This document shows positions 28,750 to 35,048 of a stretch of DNA of 64,000 bases, piece after piece. The DNA is taken from the NCBI GenBank assembly GCA_020891255.1, contig BQFW01000008.1, positions 1,488,001 through 1,552,000 on the forward strand, given 5' to 3'. How positions within the stretch are numbered: the stretch's first letter is position 1; each line of letters begins with the position of its first letter. The position numbers and the translations under genes were made by a program. The notes under the pieces were generated by a model. It was given only the letters and a program-made list of their open reading frames with translations. It searched no databases and was not told where the DNA came from. The stretch is from Entomortierella parvispora E1425. Lineage: Eukaryota > Fungi > Mortierellomycota.

Positions 28750-31700
28750 CTAGTATTGTCCTATTCTGAGAGGACGATCTTTTGTGAAAAACCACGATTT
28801 CTCGTTCAGGACCTGGTCGATCAAATGCCGTTGATCCTTCCGTGTGGGCTTTTCTCCACTTCCGCTGCCGACACCACGGAGTTGATGCTGCTGCTGCAAA
28901 GGATGGTGGCGTGGCACAGACGGATGCCCGTTGCTACCTTGACTGCCACTATTGCCCTGAGCGCTGGCCATGGATGACATCGTGCCAGTTTGTTGAGCCT
29001 GTCCGCTTCGACTCATCTCGTCCTGCGAGAACGAAGTCGAGGGAGAAGAGCCATACATGATTTTTAGTTTGGTCGCGACTTCCTTTCGAGCTGCTATCCG
29101 TCGATGTCCTGTCCATTGTTCCAGCAGTTGGAGTACAGGTCCCACCATGTCCTTACTCTTCTCCCGGCGACGCTGCTGTTGCTGATAAGCAGGGTAGGAG
29201 GGGTTTGGGGAAGGAGACCGGCCATTGTGGAGGGGCTTTTGCGGAATGAGATCCAACTGACCAGCCGCAGCACCGACCCAAGTGAATTTTCCAAGTTCCC
29301 TAATCTCCTCAATCAAGCTCAATAGCCCTTGTCCTTCTGTAGAGTTGGCAGGAGGGACATAGTTTCCATTGGATGTCGGCGAGCTTGGAGATGTCGGCGA
29401 AGAGCCAACATCTAAAGGATAGAGTACTCGGATGACCCGCATAGCCTTGATGATATCGGCTTCAGAAGCACTAATATCGAGATCATGGTTCAACAGCCAC
29501 TCTACGTTCTTGATCTTGAGGTGAGCTGCCGCAACAACGAGTGCAGTCTCACCTTGAGAGTACCCCGTAGCTCCTTGACTTTGATGAGAACGTGAAGGCG
29601 GGTATCCTGGACTATAGGGGCTACTATATCGGATGGCGGGGTCAAGCCCCGCTTCACAGAGAAGATCTAGAATTCGATAATCCTCTTGCATGGCTGCCAC
29701 AATATGGATCAAAGGCCGACCATTGTACTGCTGCTGCTGTTGTTGTTGTCCCTGCCCTGCGGTGATGCCTCTCTCTTGCTGAGGTGGTGACTTTTTGAGA
29801 CCAACTACCGGGTTTCCTGTGCCACCATTTTGAAGCTGATGCGGTTTTGAATCATGTACGAATTGCAGAGCATACGCTTGTGAAGAACTCAAAGGCACGA
29901 TGGGCTGTCGAACATAGGCCGGGATGCGTGCTCCTCTCATCACAAAGTACTTGAGTGATTCATAGCACTGAGTATTGGATGTGACCAAAGACATGACGGG
30001 AGTGTAGCCCTGCAGGTTTTCCAGATTGATGTCTGCGCCCAGTTCGACCAGGACCTTGATCATGTCCAGCGGATTCTCCAAAAAGAGGCAGGCAAGATGA
30101 AGAGCGGTATCACCTGTTTGCTCGCTAGATTCATTGATAGGGTTGTAGGCTGATCCATGATGGAGTTGCGGCTGCGTCAGATAGTAGTGAAATGTTGCAA
30201 TGTCACCTACGATCGGACATAGATAGACTGGTGTCCTTGGAGGATTTGAAAATGAATACGGCTCGGGTCGCTGCTGCTCAACAAGAAATGCTCGTGTACC
30301 TAGAAACAGCAATGGTTGTCAGACGAATAAAAATCGATCAATGCTCTGTAGTAGAGAGGAGGGATGACAATAAAAAGAAAGAAAGAAAGAAAAAAGGCCC
30401 AAACCCGCTCTTACGTTCGACATATCTCGCAGTTTCTTTCATGGCCGGATCCTGGACTTCAAACATCAGCTTATTAAACCGACTGGTCGCCCTTTCCAAT
30501 GCCGCCATCTTTGCATTCAGGTCTGGTGGCACTGGAAGGGCCGCTGACTTTGTCAAGCTGGGCACCATAAACCCGGTTGCGACCTGATGAACAGGCTCTG
30601 AGGGTTTGGCCATCAAAGCCTGCAAAACTGCAATGACCACGTCGATCTTGAGTCTCCGGCTGGGCTTTATATCCCAGCATTTCACGAGCAAGTCCCGGTA
30701 TTCCCGTGGCGTCCCGGGAACAATCTCTTCTCTGAGTCCATGCAAAAGATCAGACAAAAGGACTGGGTCCTTCAGTCTGTCTCCAAATGGAATCCGACCC
30801 GAGGAGATGTGCCAAAAGATCACGCCAAGACTGTAGATATCACACGATGCAGAGTAAATGGGTCTTTTTGGCGGAAACCTCTCTGGCGCCAAGAAAGACG
30901 CGACACCCACGGCTGCCACCAAATCCGTTGTTTGAGCTTTGGTGGCCGATCGACTCAGACCGAAATCACAGATCAAGGCAGTCCGTTTGTCATCCAACAA
31001 AATGTTGCCAGAATGAAGATCTCGATGGTGAAAGCCAGACTTGTGCAGGAACTCGAGTCCCTTTGTAATCTCGATCGAAAGTCGGTATCGCTCAGCCCAC
31101 GTCAAGACCGCGTGATACTTGCCCAAGAATGCACACAGGTTGCCGTTTGTGCAGTGCTTCATCACCATACACTTGACTCCTGTAGTAGGGTCTGTTGTCA
31201 CACCATAGAAGGGTACAATAAAGTCGTAGTCGTGCACTCTTTTCAAAATCTCAAGCTAGCGAAAAAAGATTCATTTGTTAAGAAGGCAGCGCTTACCTTG
31301 GCATTCAATGGACAGTTATTAGCATCGCAACTTACCTCTTGTTCAAACTGTTCGACGCCCTCATTGTGCTCCACTAGAGCTCTTTTCAGCACCACACGAA
31401 GTCGCGACCACTCTCCTGTGTGGATCTCTCCAAAACCACCTCGCTTCATAGGTTGGATATCCGTAATATCGTTATAGTAGATCGTCCGATAGCTGCTCAC
31501 GACTGTTCGCTGTAATATCCGCGTACGCTCGCGTTTCAAGGTCTCCTTTGTTTCCAGCTCTGGTGTGTAATGCGTCACTGGCCCATCAGTACTCACAATC
31601 ATACGCCCGGGGTCCTCTTTGGGCTTGATCTTGGGCCGCGCCGCCAGAGGAGGTGGCACGGCTCGAGCGGAAAGGTCATTTGGATTGGACTGAGGCATCT

Positions 31701-32168
31701 GTTGCTGTAGGTTGTCAGCTGCTTGTTGAGAGCTCAACTGCCGTGGGAAGTCTGTACGAGAATATTTGGAAGAAATTATCCCATCCGATAGTTCAACTCC
31801 ATCTACCGACGAAGTATATTCGTTGCTAGTGGCATCAGTTGGGAGAGAATACACTCCAACAGAGTGTGCAGCGTCGTCTTTCGATGCAGACATGGTGCTA
31901 GTCCCCGTTGGGCGAGCAGAAGTGACGATATGAGGGCGCAGTGAAGGGAGAGCTGATTGCATTCGCTCCTGCTCTTGTTGTTGAGGATGTGGGCTGAGGA
32001 CTGGAGCTGGGCTTAGCGATTCTCGGCGACTTGGGATGTTGGATGGGGGCAATATTGGTGGCGCATTTGAATACACGAAGCTTGCTGGTCGTTGTTGCTG
32101 CTGTTGTTGTTGGGGAATGACCAGGGGTCTTGGGAGATGCGAGCTATGATGCTGACGCTGGTTCTGCA

Positions 32169-32205
<37 letters not shown>

Positions 32206-32242
32206 CTGGTGCCGCTGGTGTTGATAAGACTGAGGCGGTAGG

Positions 32243-32279
<37 letters not shown>

Positions 32280-32949
32280 GATGGAGGCCGTTTGAGATAC
32301 TTGGGTGCGTTATTGAAAAGCCATCCTGACGTTGAGGGTGGTGTTGGTGTTGGTGTTGGTGCTGGTGTTGGTGCTGGTGCTGGTGCTGATCTTGTGGCGG
32401 AACTACATGAGATTGACCTTGGTGAAAAGATTGACGTTGCTGATCAATTCGACCTTGCACAGAGGGACTAGGTGACCTCTGCGCCTGGGCACCATTACTA
32501 TCACCATTGTTGAAGCCATTGAAGCTGTTTCTGGCAAAAGATGAAGATGTCGCGACAGGTAGTGAGAGGTCGAAGCTGGGTTGATACGACATGGCAAAGG
32601 GGTCAAACATAACACGGGTCCGAAGTTGCTGATCTTCATTCTCTTGATCACCCAGTTCTCCCGACATGTATCCTTCTTCCTCCTCGTCTTCTCTCAGGGG
32701 ATTGTCAACGAAGGCGCCAGCTCCATAGCGTTGTTGCCATTGCTGAAAGGATGTGGTATTGGCGGTGCTGGCAGAAAGGGGCATGGACAGTGGTGCGGTG
32801 GAGAGCTCGGCCGTGCTGAGATATTCGAATTCAATGTCCAGAGTGGTCTTGTCACCTAGAACAGCCTGGTAACTGTAGACAGAGTGAAGACTGTTGGAAG
32901 TGGAGGACGTTTGGATAGAATGGGTCCTGTCGAGATCTGCTAACGTCAT
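28750..32949 (-). CDS. Tyrosine-kinase-like (TKL) protein kinase with Gln/His-rich N-terminus and C-terminal ankyrin repeats; 3 exons
   Basis: Gly loop RGGFGEIH, VVLK, HRDLHSGNILL, DFG, FLAPE and DIYSLGVIFW. C-terminal ankyrin-like repeats (TGDTALHLAC...GADINLENLQGYTPV; GRPLIHIVA; GETALVVAAA). ATG at 32949 is in the frame of ORF 31243-33306. Confidence 0.85.
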
Positions 32950-33612: not shown

Positions 33613-35048
33613 CTATATTCCAAGGATAGAATCCAGCCATTCCGCGTCATTGGCACCTTTGCCCGAGCCCTTTTTGGGTCCTCCAGGGAGTGGCCCTTTG
33701 GGCTGTGCAGGAGGAGTTTTTCCTTTGGATGGAGGAGGAAGACGAGGCTTTCGACCCAACTCACTGCTTTCCTGATTATTTGTTGGCCGTGAAGGCCCAG
33801 ACCGTGACTTTCCATATGATTTTGTAATATCAAGCAAGTCGTCCAGGTCGGCATCCAAGGAGGCTGCAGAAATATAAAGTGGCTGATTAGAAACGACCCA
33901 TAGAAGCTGTGAAATGACACGGCACACATTGAAAAGGATAGACCTCATACCTTGGTCCGTAATCTTTGATCCAGCAGCTTCCACCATTGCTGCCTTACTA
34001 TAACTATCCATGAGGGTGACGTTTCTCTGAACACCTGTTGTGGGCGTAGGTCCTGAAGGTTTAATCAAAATATCTGCCGCGGCTTCTCCGCGGACCAGCT
34101 TTGGTACAATTGGTTTTCCTTTGGACAAGGACACCTTTCCAACAAGATCCTCGTCTAACTGCATGATAAAAAGAAAAAATCATAGGTAGCGTGAGTTGGT
34201 TGCCTTGGGGTAACTTTGCATCAATATGGAAGGTTGCTAAAATCACTTTACAGCCCTGGCATCCGACTCGCGCAGAAACAAACGGTCCTTGATAGACAAC
34301 GTCATCAAAGCCTCTTCGATATCATTCAGTCGAACCTCTAAAAGCTTCCGAGCCTGTTGAGAGTTCTCCAAAGGATCCTGTACTTCGACCTCCTTTTCAG
34401 ATTTGAATCGAAAATAGGCGGCTGGATCAAAGGTCTGTTTTTGATCAGAGTCCTTGAGAAGCTCCTTGAATGCTAATGTCTGTCTATCGATGCCCTGCTC
34501 TAGCTCCTCAGACTCGGTTACTATCCAATACAAACAGAAAATGAAAAAAAAAAACAACAAGAAAAGCAATCTTATCAGCGCAAAGTCGAGACCAATTAGT
34601 AATATAAGATTGGTTCATGTTCAAGGACTTACCTTCGTCCTCTCGTTCCAGATACCTATCAGCATTGCTTGTGATCTTGCGTCGTGCATAGCTTTTTCTT
34701 GGGGCTGTCAGAACCCACCCAGACACGAAGCAAAAGCGCGTCCATGTTAGTATCCATGCAGTGACTTTCAAAGTATCTTTACAAGAAAATGGAAAGTCGG
34801 CATTGTCCTAGCAAGTACTTACTACCATCCTCATTTTCATCCTCGTCGTCATTCTCTTGAATATTTCCGCTGTGTCCTCTGTAGCCCTCACGTCCGCCTC
34901 CTCGGCCCCGACCTGCACCAGCGCCTCCTCGGCCGCCACGGCCAGCGGCAGAGGCTTCACTGTTTGATCCCGCAACGCTTCCTCCGCGGCCTCGGACCTT
35001 ATTGTGGTATTTCCTGGAGGCGGCTTGCTTATGTGGGTCTGGCCTCAT
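33613..35048 (-). CDS. Aven-like RGG-box protein; 4 exons
   Basis: ORFs 34779-35048, 34508-34771, 34243-34569 and 33613-34164 join by GT-AG introns. The product has an RGG tract, an acidic patch, YARRKITSNADRY, FRFKSEKE, LDADLDDLL and terminal EWLDSIL. The gene itself is well supported; the Aven assignment rests on recalled motifs. Confidence 0.75.

Follow-up and report, generated by a model that had tools for sequence, protein, structure and literature searches.

Aven is known mainly from animals. In mouse and human cells, the SKI complex has two stable interactors, AVEN and FOCAD, which copurify with it (PMC7083229, Tuck 2020), and AVEN, FOCAD, SKIV2L, and TTC37 are mutually stabilizing (PMC11864970). 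Conservation of AVEN has been described as reaching "from mammals to flies"; the protein binds structured RNA that is rich in GC, and when it is lost there is more ribosome stalling, more binding of SKIV2L, and more 3'-5' decay (PMC7083229). Furthermore, the RGG motif of Aven binds G-quadruplex (G4) RNA and puts the protein on polysomes (PMC4561382, Thandapani 2015). Its partner FOCAD is, in animals, an ARM-repeat protein with a link to the SKI2-SKI3-SKI8 helicase complex. Here, we describe EMPS_06141, a gene on the minus strand of a 64,000-nucleotide stretch of the genome of the soil fungus Entomortierella parvispora E1425 (Mortierellomycota; assembly GCA_020891255.1, 3.3-Mb contig BQFW01000008.1, positions 1,488,001 to 1,552,000; hereafter the window, whose numbering is used throughout), the product of which almost certainly belongs to the AVEN family (PF28377).

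The gene runs from an ATG at 35048 to a stop codon ending at 33613, which are exactly the limits given in an initial annotation of this locus. The gene model was obtained by translating the reverse complement in three frames, across all of which the motif blocks are scattered, and then splicing, giving five exons and four GT-AG introns (Table 1), one exon more than the four initially proposed. The spliced coding sequence (CDS) of 1026 nucleotides (nt) encodes a protein of 341 amino acids (aa) that is identical, residue for residue, to GJJ73783.1 / UniRef A0A9P3HC69 ("hypothetical protein EMPS_06141", an independent public annotation), and all four exon junctions are crossed smoothly in alignments with orthologues. 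We note that a mechanically called open reading frame at 33613-34164 runs straight through intron 4, because this intron lacks an in-frame stop. When read in the spliced protein, the motif blocks listed initially are all present and keep their order: the RGG/RG tract (aa 19-58), the acidic patch (65-74), SYARRKITSNADRY (80-93), AFKELL...FRFKSEKE (116-143), LEVRLNDIEEALMTLSIKDRLFL (160-182), SLDADLDDLL (260-269), and the terminal AEWLDSILGI. The corresponding blocks of human AVEN, as quoted in the annotation, proved essentially correct when checked against the Aven of another primate, Cebus imitator, which reads NYSKRKIVSNWDRY, DFSVLL...FRFAEEKEW, LVRALQELPLSLRLN, LEEELDLLL, and EDWLDSMIS.

The proposal that this protein is a full-length fungal homologue of Aven is borne out by sequence and profile comparisons, in which the similarity greatly exceeds what chance would give. 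An exhaustive HMMER search with the 89-aa peptide encoded by exon 3 yielded a small fungal family, which was the source of the full-length relatives used here. A profile built from fungal sequences only (16 sequences) retrieved members from the Glomeromycota as well as the Aven of the fish Oryzias melastigma, the latter with an E-value of 1.6e-8 (5.77e9 sequences), and a single-sequence search with the Gamsiella orthologue returned approximately 45 Mortierellaceae, one member of the Mucorales, and one chytrid, with Cebus imitator Aven as the sole non-fungal match (E 3.8e-3). Aven is the only non-fungal family recovered in either the fungal-profile or the single-sequence searches. When the same fungal-only profile was compared with two animal Avens using hhalign, we obtained a probability of 98.8% and an E-value of 1.2e-16 over 100 columns, with the matched region corresponding to fungal aa 75-187, that is, to the nonrepetitive core outside the RGG tract. 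BLASTP of the EMPS_06141 product against primate Aven gave an E-value of 1e-7, with 37% identity over 92 aa. In the reverse direction, phmmer searches of the 74 collected proteins (Z = 5.77e9) starting from primate Aven reached Mortierellaceae proteins with E-values from 1.5e-7 to 1e-3, and those starting from fish Aven likewise reached fungal proteins. The word-indexed searches scored the 8000 candidates sharing most words with the query; within that scope, a profile combining fungal and animal sequences left the fungal set essentially unchanged and added neither phyla nor animal Avens.

The novelty is smaller than the initial annotation had assumed, as the homology between the fungal and animal proteins is already captured at the database level by the newest Pfam AVEN family, PF28377. 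A precomputed PF28377:AVEN match, unmarked (and thus with E ≤ 1e-5), is present on EMPS_06141 itself, and the same label is carried by all of the fungal relatives, by the fish Aven gene, and by primate Aven. A copy of Pfam-A without PF28377 gave no match for the five exon peptides or for the full-length fungal and animal proteins, genuine primate Aven included; since genuine Aven is missed as well, this blank scan is no evidence against family membership. GenBank and UniProt label the EMPS_06141 product as hypothetical or uncharacterized, and we found no mention of a fungal Aven in the papers searched, whether by name or by the accessions of the family.

Taking the fungal and animal sequences together, the family alignment is colinear, and its blocks run from a basic N-terminus and an acidic patch through RRKxxSNxDRY, an amphipathic LL helix, (Y)F(R/Q)F(K/S)xEK(D/E)W, LExxLxxL(P/S)xxxRLxL, and (D/E)LDxLL to (D/E)WLD(S/D)xL at the extreme C-terminus. 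The E. parvispora protein is similar in length to the two animal Avens compared (341 aa vs 299-353 aa in C. imitator and O. melastigma), at an overall identity of ~25%, and it has in common with them an RGG/RG tract near the N-terminus with an acidic patch after it, as well as, in the same order, RRKxxSNxDRY, the LL helix, FRFxxEKxW, LxxLPLxxRL, LDxLL, and the C-terminal (D/E)WLDSxx. The exon 2 motif PRKSYARRKITSNADRY aligns with SKRKIVSNWDRY / SRRKLESNWDRY of animal Aven, and the fungal LDADLDDLLDI sits at the same spacing as the animal LEEELDLLLNL block. Across 48 sequences, the sole invariant residue is E141, in the FRF/EK block. Residues that are nearly invariant comprise R83, R84, N89, R92, and Y93 in the RRKxxSNxDRY motif, Y135, F136, F138, K139, E168, L171, R179, and L180 in exon 3, P205, I206, P208, and K209 in exon 4, and D266, L269, W334, L335, and D336 in exon 5.

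Every fungal member of full length, from the chytrids through to Mortierella, opens with a conserved MRPDxHKxxxxRKYxxK motif that is predicted to be helical. We note that some of the database entries appear incomplete: five other family entries look N-terminally truncated, and the annotated orthologues from Lunasporangiospora and Podila are without the ~25 residues (VTEAEELEQGIDRQT.AF.ELLKD) that start exon 3 in EMPS_06141, which probably reflects a miscalled splice acceptor and no real deletion.

A further difference between the two groups lies ahead of the FRF motif, where animals have LLxSAGDSF and fungi have LLKDSDQKQTFDP, with a 5-residue insertion and no G-D. The animal string fits the pattern L-x3-G-D, which, in our own reading of the sequence, suggests a BH3-like element; a BH3 was reportedly predicted in Aven by Hawley in 2012. 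The gene layouts differ as well, with five exons in 1.4 kb in the fungus compared to six exons in 28 kb for fish Aven. Fungal intron 3 (phase 0, 9 codons past the conserved RL) nearly coincides with intron 4 of fish Aven (phase 0, 8 codons past RL), and the other fungal intron positions have no match in the fish gene. This near-coincidence is suggestive at best of one shared intron.

The initial annotation had also called for an AlphaFold comparison, and the models of the fungal and fish proteins, which are not independent of one another, show the same pattern of disorder and helices. For the fungal protein, AlphaFold2 predicts no globular fold (mean predicted local distance difference test score (pLDDT) 55.9, predicted template modeling score (pTM) 0.20), with helices at aa 5-20 (pLDDT ~71), 112-123, 149-196, 255-268, and 330-338 that correspond to the conserved blocks; the best-predicted part is aa 160-190, encoded by exon 3 (pLDDT 84-87). 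The model of fish Aven (pLDDT 54.0, pTM 0.20) places helices at 112-122, 138-172, 231-240, and 287-298, matching the fungal positions. The EMPS_06141 product is thus predicted to be intrinsically disordered, with short helices at its conserved motifs. Sequence searches of the PDB with the fungal profile, fish Aven, and the N-terminal 27 aa found no solved structure of any AVEN-family member; the last of these queries, which covers the region of the MRPDxHK motif, gave no match.

One candidate similarity, the only kind of match that these PDB searches returned, was considered and rejected, namely, that between the LDxLL region of the fungal profile and a disordered acidic stretch of yeast Ski2 (8qcf_M / 5mc6_h, residues 238-300, ending in DDAEIDELLPI), which is at chance level (E ~0.5). 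Ski2 is the helicase with which mammalian AVEN associates, and its match to this region is not significant.

Members of the family were found in more than 40 species of Mortierellomycota, in the Glomeromycota (Rhizophagus, Glomus, Funneliformis, Gigaspora, Cetraspora, and Racocetra), in one species of Mucorales (Helicostylum), and in two chytrids (Blyttiomyces and Rhizophlyctis rosea). This distribution supports the view, put forward in the initial annotation, of an ancestral opisthokont protein that, judging from these sequences, would have arisen before the animal-fungal split. Because a full-length relative is present in a fungus, the family predates animals and the Bcl-2/Apaf-1 death machinery. 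We found no relatives from Dikarya among the 8000 candidates scored per search, a scope within which absence is not proven, and the overall pattern is consistent with a loss of AVEN in Dikarya, including yeasts.

The coordinates of the gene and its features are collected in Table 1.

Table 1. Features of the AVEN-family gene EMPS_06141, in positions of the window.
Feature	Position	Strand	Basis
EMPS_06141, whole coding region	33613..35048	-	splicing; identity with GJJ73783.1; precomputed PF28377:AVEN match
Exon 1, aa 1-75 and first base of codon 76: basic N-terminal motif MRPDPHKQAASRKYHNKV, RGG/RG tract, acidic patch	34823..35048	-	
RGG/RG tract, aa 19-58 (4 RGG, 7 RG), putative RNA-binding region	34875..34994	-	
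Acidic patch ENDDEDENED, aa 65-74; aligns with acidic stretch ahead of the RRK motif in animal Aven	34827..34856	-	
Intron 1, 118 nt, phase 1: GTAAGT donor, TACTAAC branch site, CAG acceptor	34705..34822	-	
Exon 2: PRKSYARRKITSNADRY motif, family signature RRKxxSNxDRY	34633..34704	-	
Intron 2, 112 nt, phase 1	34521..34632	-	
Exon 3, conserved core: AFKELL helix, YFRFKSEKE, LEVRLNDIEEALMTLSIKDRLFL	34252..34520	-	inside hhalign match
Intron 3, 93 nt, phase 0, 9 codons past conserved RL	34159..34251	-	
Exon 4: fungal GKPIVPKLVRG motif and disordered linker	33951..34158	-	
Intron 4, 87 nt, phase 1	33864..33950	-	
Exon 5: LDADLDDLLDI helix, K/P-rich disordered tail, C-terminal AEWLDSILGI helix, stop codon	33613..33863	-	

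Three candidate two-tetrad (GG) quadruplexes lie in the RGG-coding stretch, at CDS nt 51-68, 106-131, and 136-155 (CDS nt 51-155; window 34875-34994, minus strand), and no quadruplex motifs with GGG runs were found in the EMPS_06141 mRNA. These GG-run candidates bear no more than loosely on the published idea that RGG proteins bind their own G-rich RNA.

Immediately upstream of the gene, on the same strand, lies a 375-aa isocitrate/isopropylmalate dehydrogenase (PF00180; 35369-37043, minus strand). Only ~320 bp separate its stop codon from the start codon of the AVEN gene, and this gap must therefore accommodate both the promoter and the 5' untranslated region of the latter. The downstream neighbor (28750-32949, minus strand) encodes a protein of 1334 aa that contains very long runs of poly-Q and His-Gln as well as the apparent start of a protein-kinase domain (GGFGEIHTGEW...VVLKR), with no Pfam match on record. 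Further along are a Tim44-family protein (PF04280; 26712-28546, plus strand) and an S10-family ribosomal protein (PF00338; ~26069 and below, plus strand), and we saw no sign of functional clustering of these Tim44-family and S10-family neighbors with the AVEN gene.

As for function, we favor a reading in which the EMPS_06141 product, as an Aven orthologue, acts as a disordered RNA-binding adaptor linked to ribosomes and SKI surveillance, and we consider this reading as a whole reasonably probable. The SKI/ribosome mechanism taken by itself, which is carried over to the fungal protein from published work on mammalian AVEN (PMC7083229; PMC4561382; PMC11864970), appears to us evenly poised between right and wrong. 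According to this model, the basic N-terminus would bind structured or G-rich mRNA on translating ribosomes, or contact the ribosome, and the conserved helices would dock onto a large folded partner, which could be a FOCAD-like or SKI protein. The fungal protein would thereby limit or resolve ribosome stalls and couple them to 3'-5' mRNA surveillance. An adaptor is favored because conservation between the fungal and animal proteins falls on short helices within a disordered chain, a hallmark of docking motifs. The ancestral role of AVEN would then lie in translation and RNA quality control, with binding to Bcl-xL and Apaf-1, the property from which the family takes its name, a later, animal addition. 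Fungi are not known to have Bcl-2-family or Apaf-1 proteins.

Several observations weigh against this reading or temper the evidence for it. The fungal and fish AlphaFold models share most of their alignment, such that their agreement amounts to consistency and not to independent proof. The reverse search from primate Aven reaches the EMPS_06141 product itself with a borderline E-value of 0.018, and, at the sequence level, the strength of the homology case comes from the profiles and not from this value. Most Mortierellaceae, and also Blyttiomyces, have an RGG tract, but it is nearly absent from Actinomortierella (one RGG) and from Helicostylum, the Glomeromycota, and Rhizophlyctis (zero or one); because the tract is this variable across the fungal members, the conserved core function cannot lie in G4 binding through RGG. 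In addition, the N-terminal MRPDxHK...RKY motif is absent from both vertebrate Avens compared, and the fungal PIVPK(L/T)VRG motif has only a weak counterpart in animals, and so the partners of the two groups may differ. Finally, FOCAD/RST1 has been stated to be "not in fungi" (PMC8116306) and "apparently absent from modern fungi" (PMC6711988).

The last two of these points, together with the RGG-rich and predicted disordered character of the protein, are also what speaks for an alternative in which a true AVEN member works without FOCAD or SKI, as a free-standing RGG mRNA-binding protein serving translation or messenger ribonucleoprotein granules, with helices that bind fungus-specific partners. 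We regard this alternative as unlikely: the motifs that have been preserved best, over roughly a billion years, are those also found in animals, and this points to a common partner, the RGG tract is dispensable in many fungal members, and the wording "absent from modern fungi" leaves room for FOCAD in early-diverging fungi.

Quite improbable, in our view, is a nuclear role, in which a true AVEN member would activate the checkpoint kinase ATM/Tel1 and would be exported in a CRM1-dependent manner through its LDxLL block. Fungi possess Tel1, and the hydrophobic x3-x3-x1 spacing of export signals is seen in the fungal LDADLDDLLDI as well as in the primate LEEELDLLLNL. In PMC4561382, moreover, Aven is described, with reference to earlier work, as an ATM activator under the control of a nuclear export sequence, and the primate block falls in the region of that published signal. 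However, neither the fish nor the Mucorales member has this spacing, and most Glomeromycota members lack it too; the stable partners identified by unbiased proteomics in mouse and human cells were FOCAD and SKI, not ATM (PMC7083229, PMC11864970); and nothing in the fungal sequence points to a kinase-binding domain. The remaining alternative, that short linear motifs converged in unrelated disordered proteins and that the scores were inflated by RGG and acidic low complexity, could draw on the largely disordered nature of both proteins, their low pairwise identity (~25%), their mostly unshared intron positions, and the blank scan with the reduced Pfam-A copy, but is so improbable as to be effectively refuted, given that the significant alignment lies in the nonrepetitive core (aa 75-187) and not in the RGG tract, that five motifs occur in the same order, one of them at the extreme C-terminus, that the fungal and animal groups are joined both by a curated Pfam model and by profile E-values between 1e-8 and 1e-16, and that the blank scan arose only from the missing PF28377 and missed genuine Aven likewise.

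Returning to the adaptor linked to ribosomes and SKI surveillance, we tentatively extend it to propose that AVEN may be an ancient opisthokont component of ribosome-associated surveillance that was kept, together with an overlooked FOCAD-like partner, in early-diverging fungi (chytrids and broad-sense Mucoromycota), with both being lost in Dikarya, and that the fungal MRPDxHK...RKY helix may be a ribosome- or RNA-docking element replaced in animals by an expanded RGG tract. We hold this extended proposal to be possible, but rather less than probable. Where recognizable AVEN is lacking, other small, lineage-restricted SKI modulators may be functional analogues, such as RIPR, the partner of RST1/FOCAD in Arabidopsis, which according to PMC8116306 is not related to AVEN, and Ska1 of Saccharomyces cerevisiae, which according to PMC6711988 occurs only in Saccharomyces and its close relatives. 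Neither RIPR nor Ska1 surfaced in any of our homology searches. Our literature search found no paper on an AVEN-FOCAD structure.

The gain from this analysis is modest, because the fungal proteins already carry the AVEN label in the newest Pfam and the function of fungal AVEN is inferred only. Nevertheless, with clear orthologues in four lineages of early-diverging fungi, AVEN must have originated ahead of the animal-fungal split, and the existence of fungi that have AVEN without Bcl-xL or Apaf-1 supports a core task for this protein in RNA and translation surveillance, not in apoptosis. The ancient parts of AVEN are its central and C-terminal helical motifs, with the RGG tract and the BH3-like string being variable between lineages, and this comparison helps to map the interaction surfaces of human AVEN, which is relevant to the stability of the SKI complex and to synthetic lethality with PELO in cancer. 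If the reading of AVEN as an ancient surveillance component is true, then its anti-apoptotic activities would be animal add-ons, and these early-diverging fungi would offer a simple system for dissecting the AVEN-FOCAD-SKI axis, which is being pursued, with PELO, as a synthetic-lethal target in cancer.

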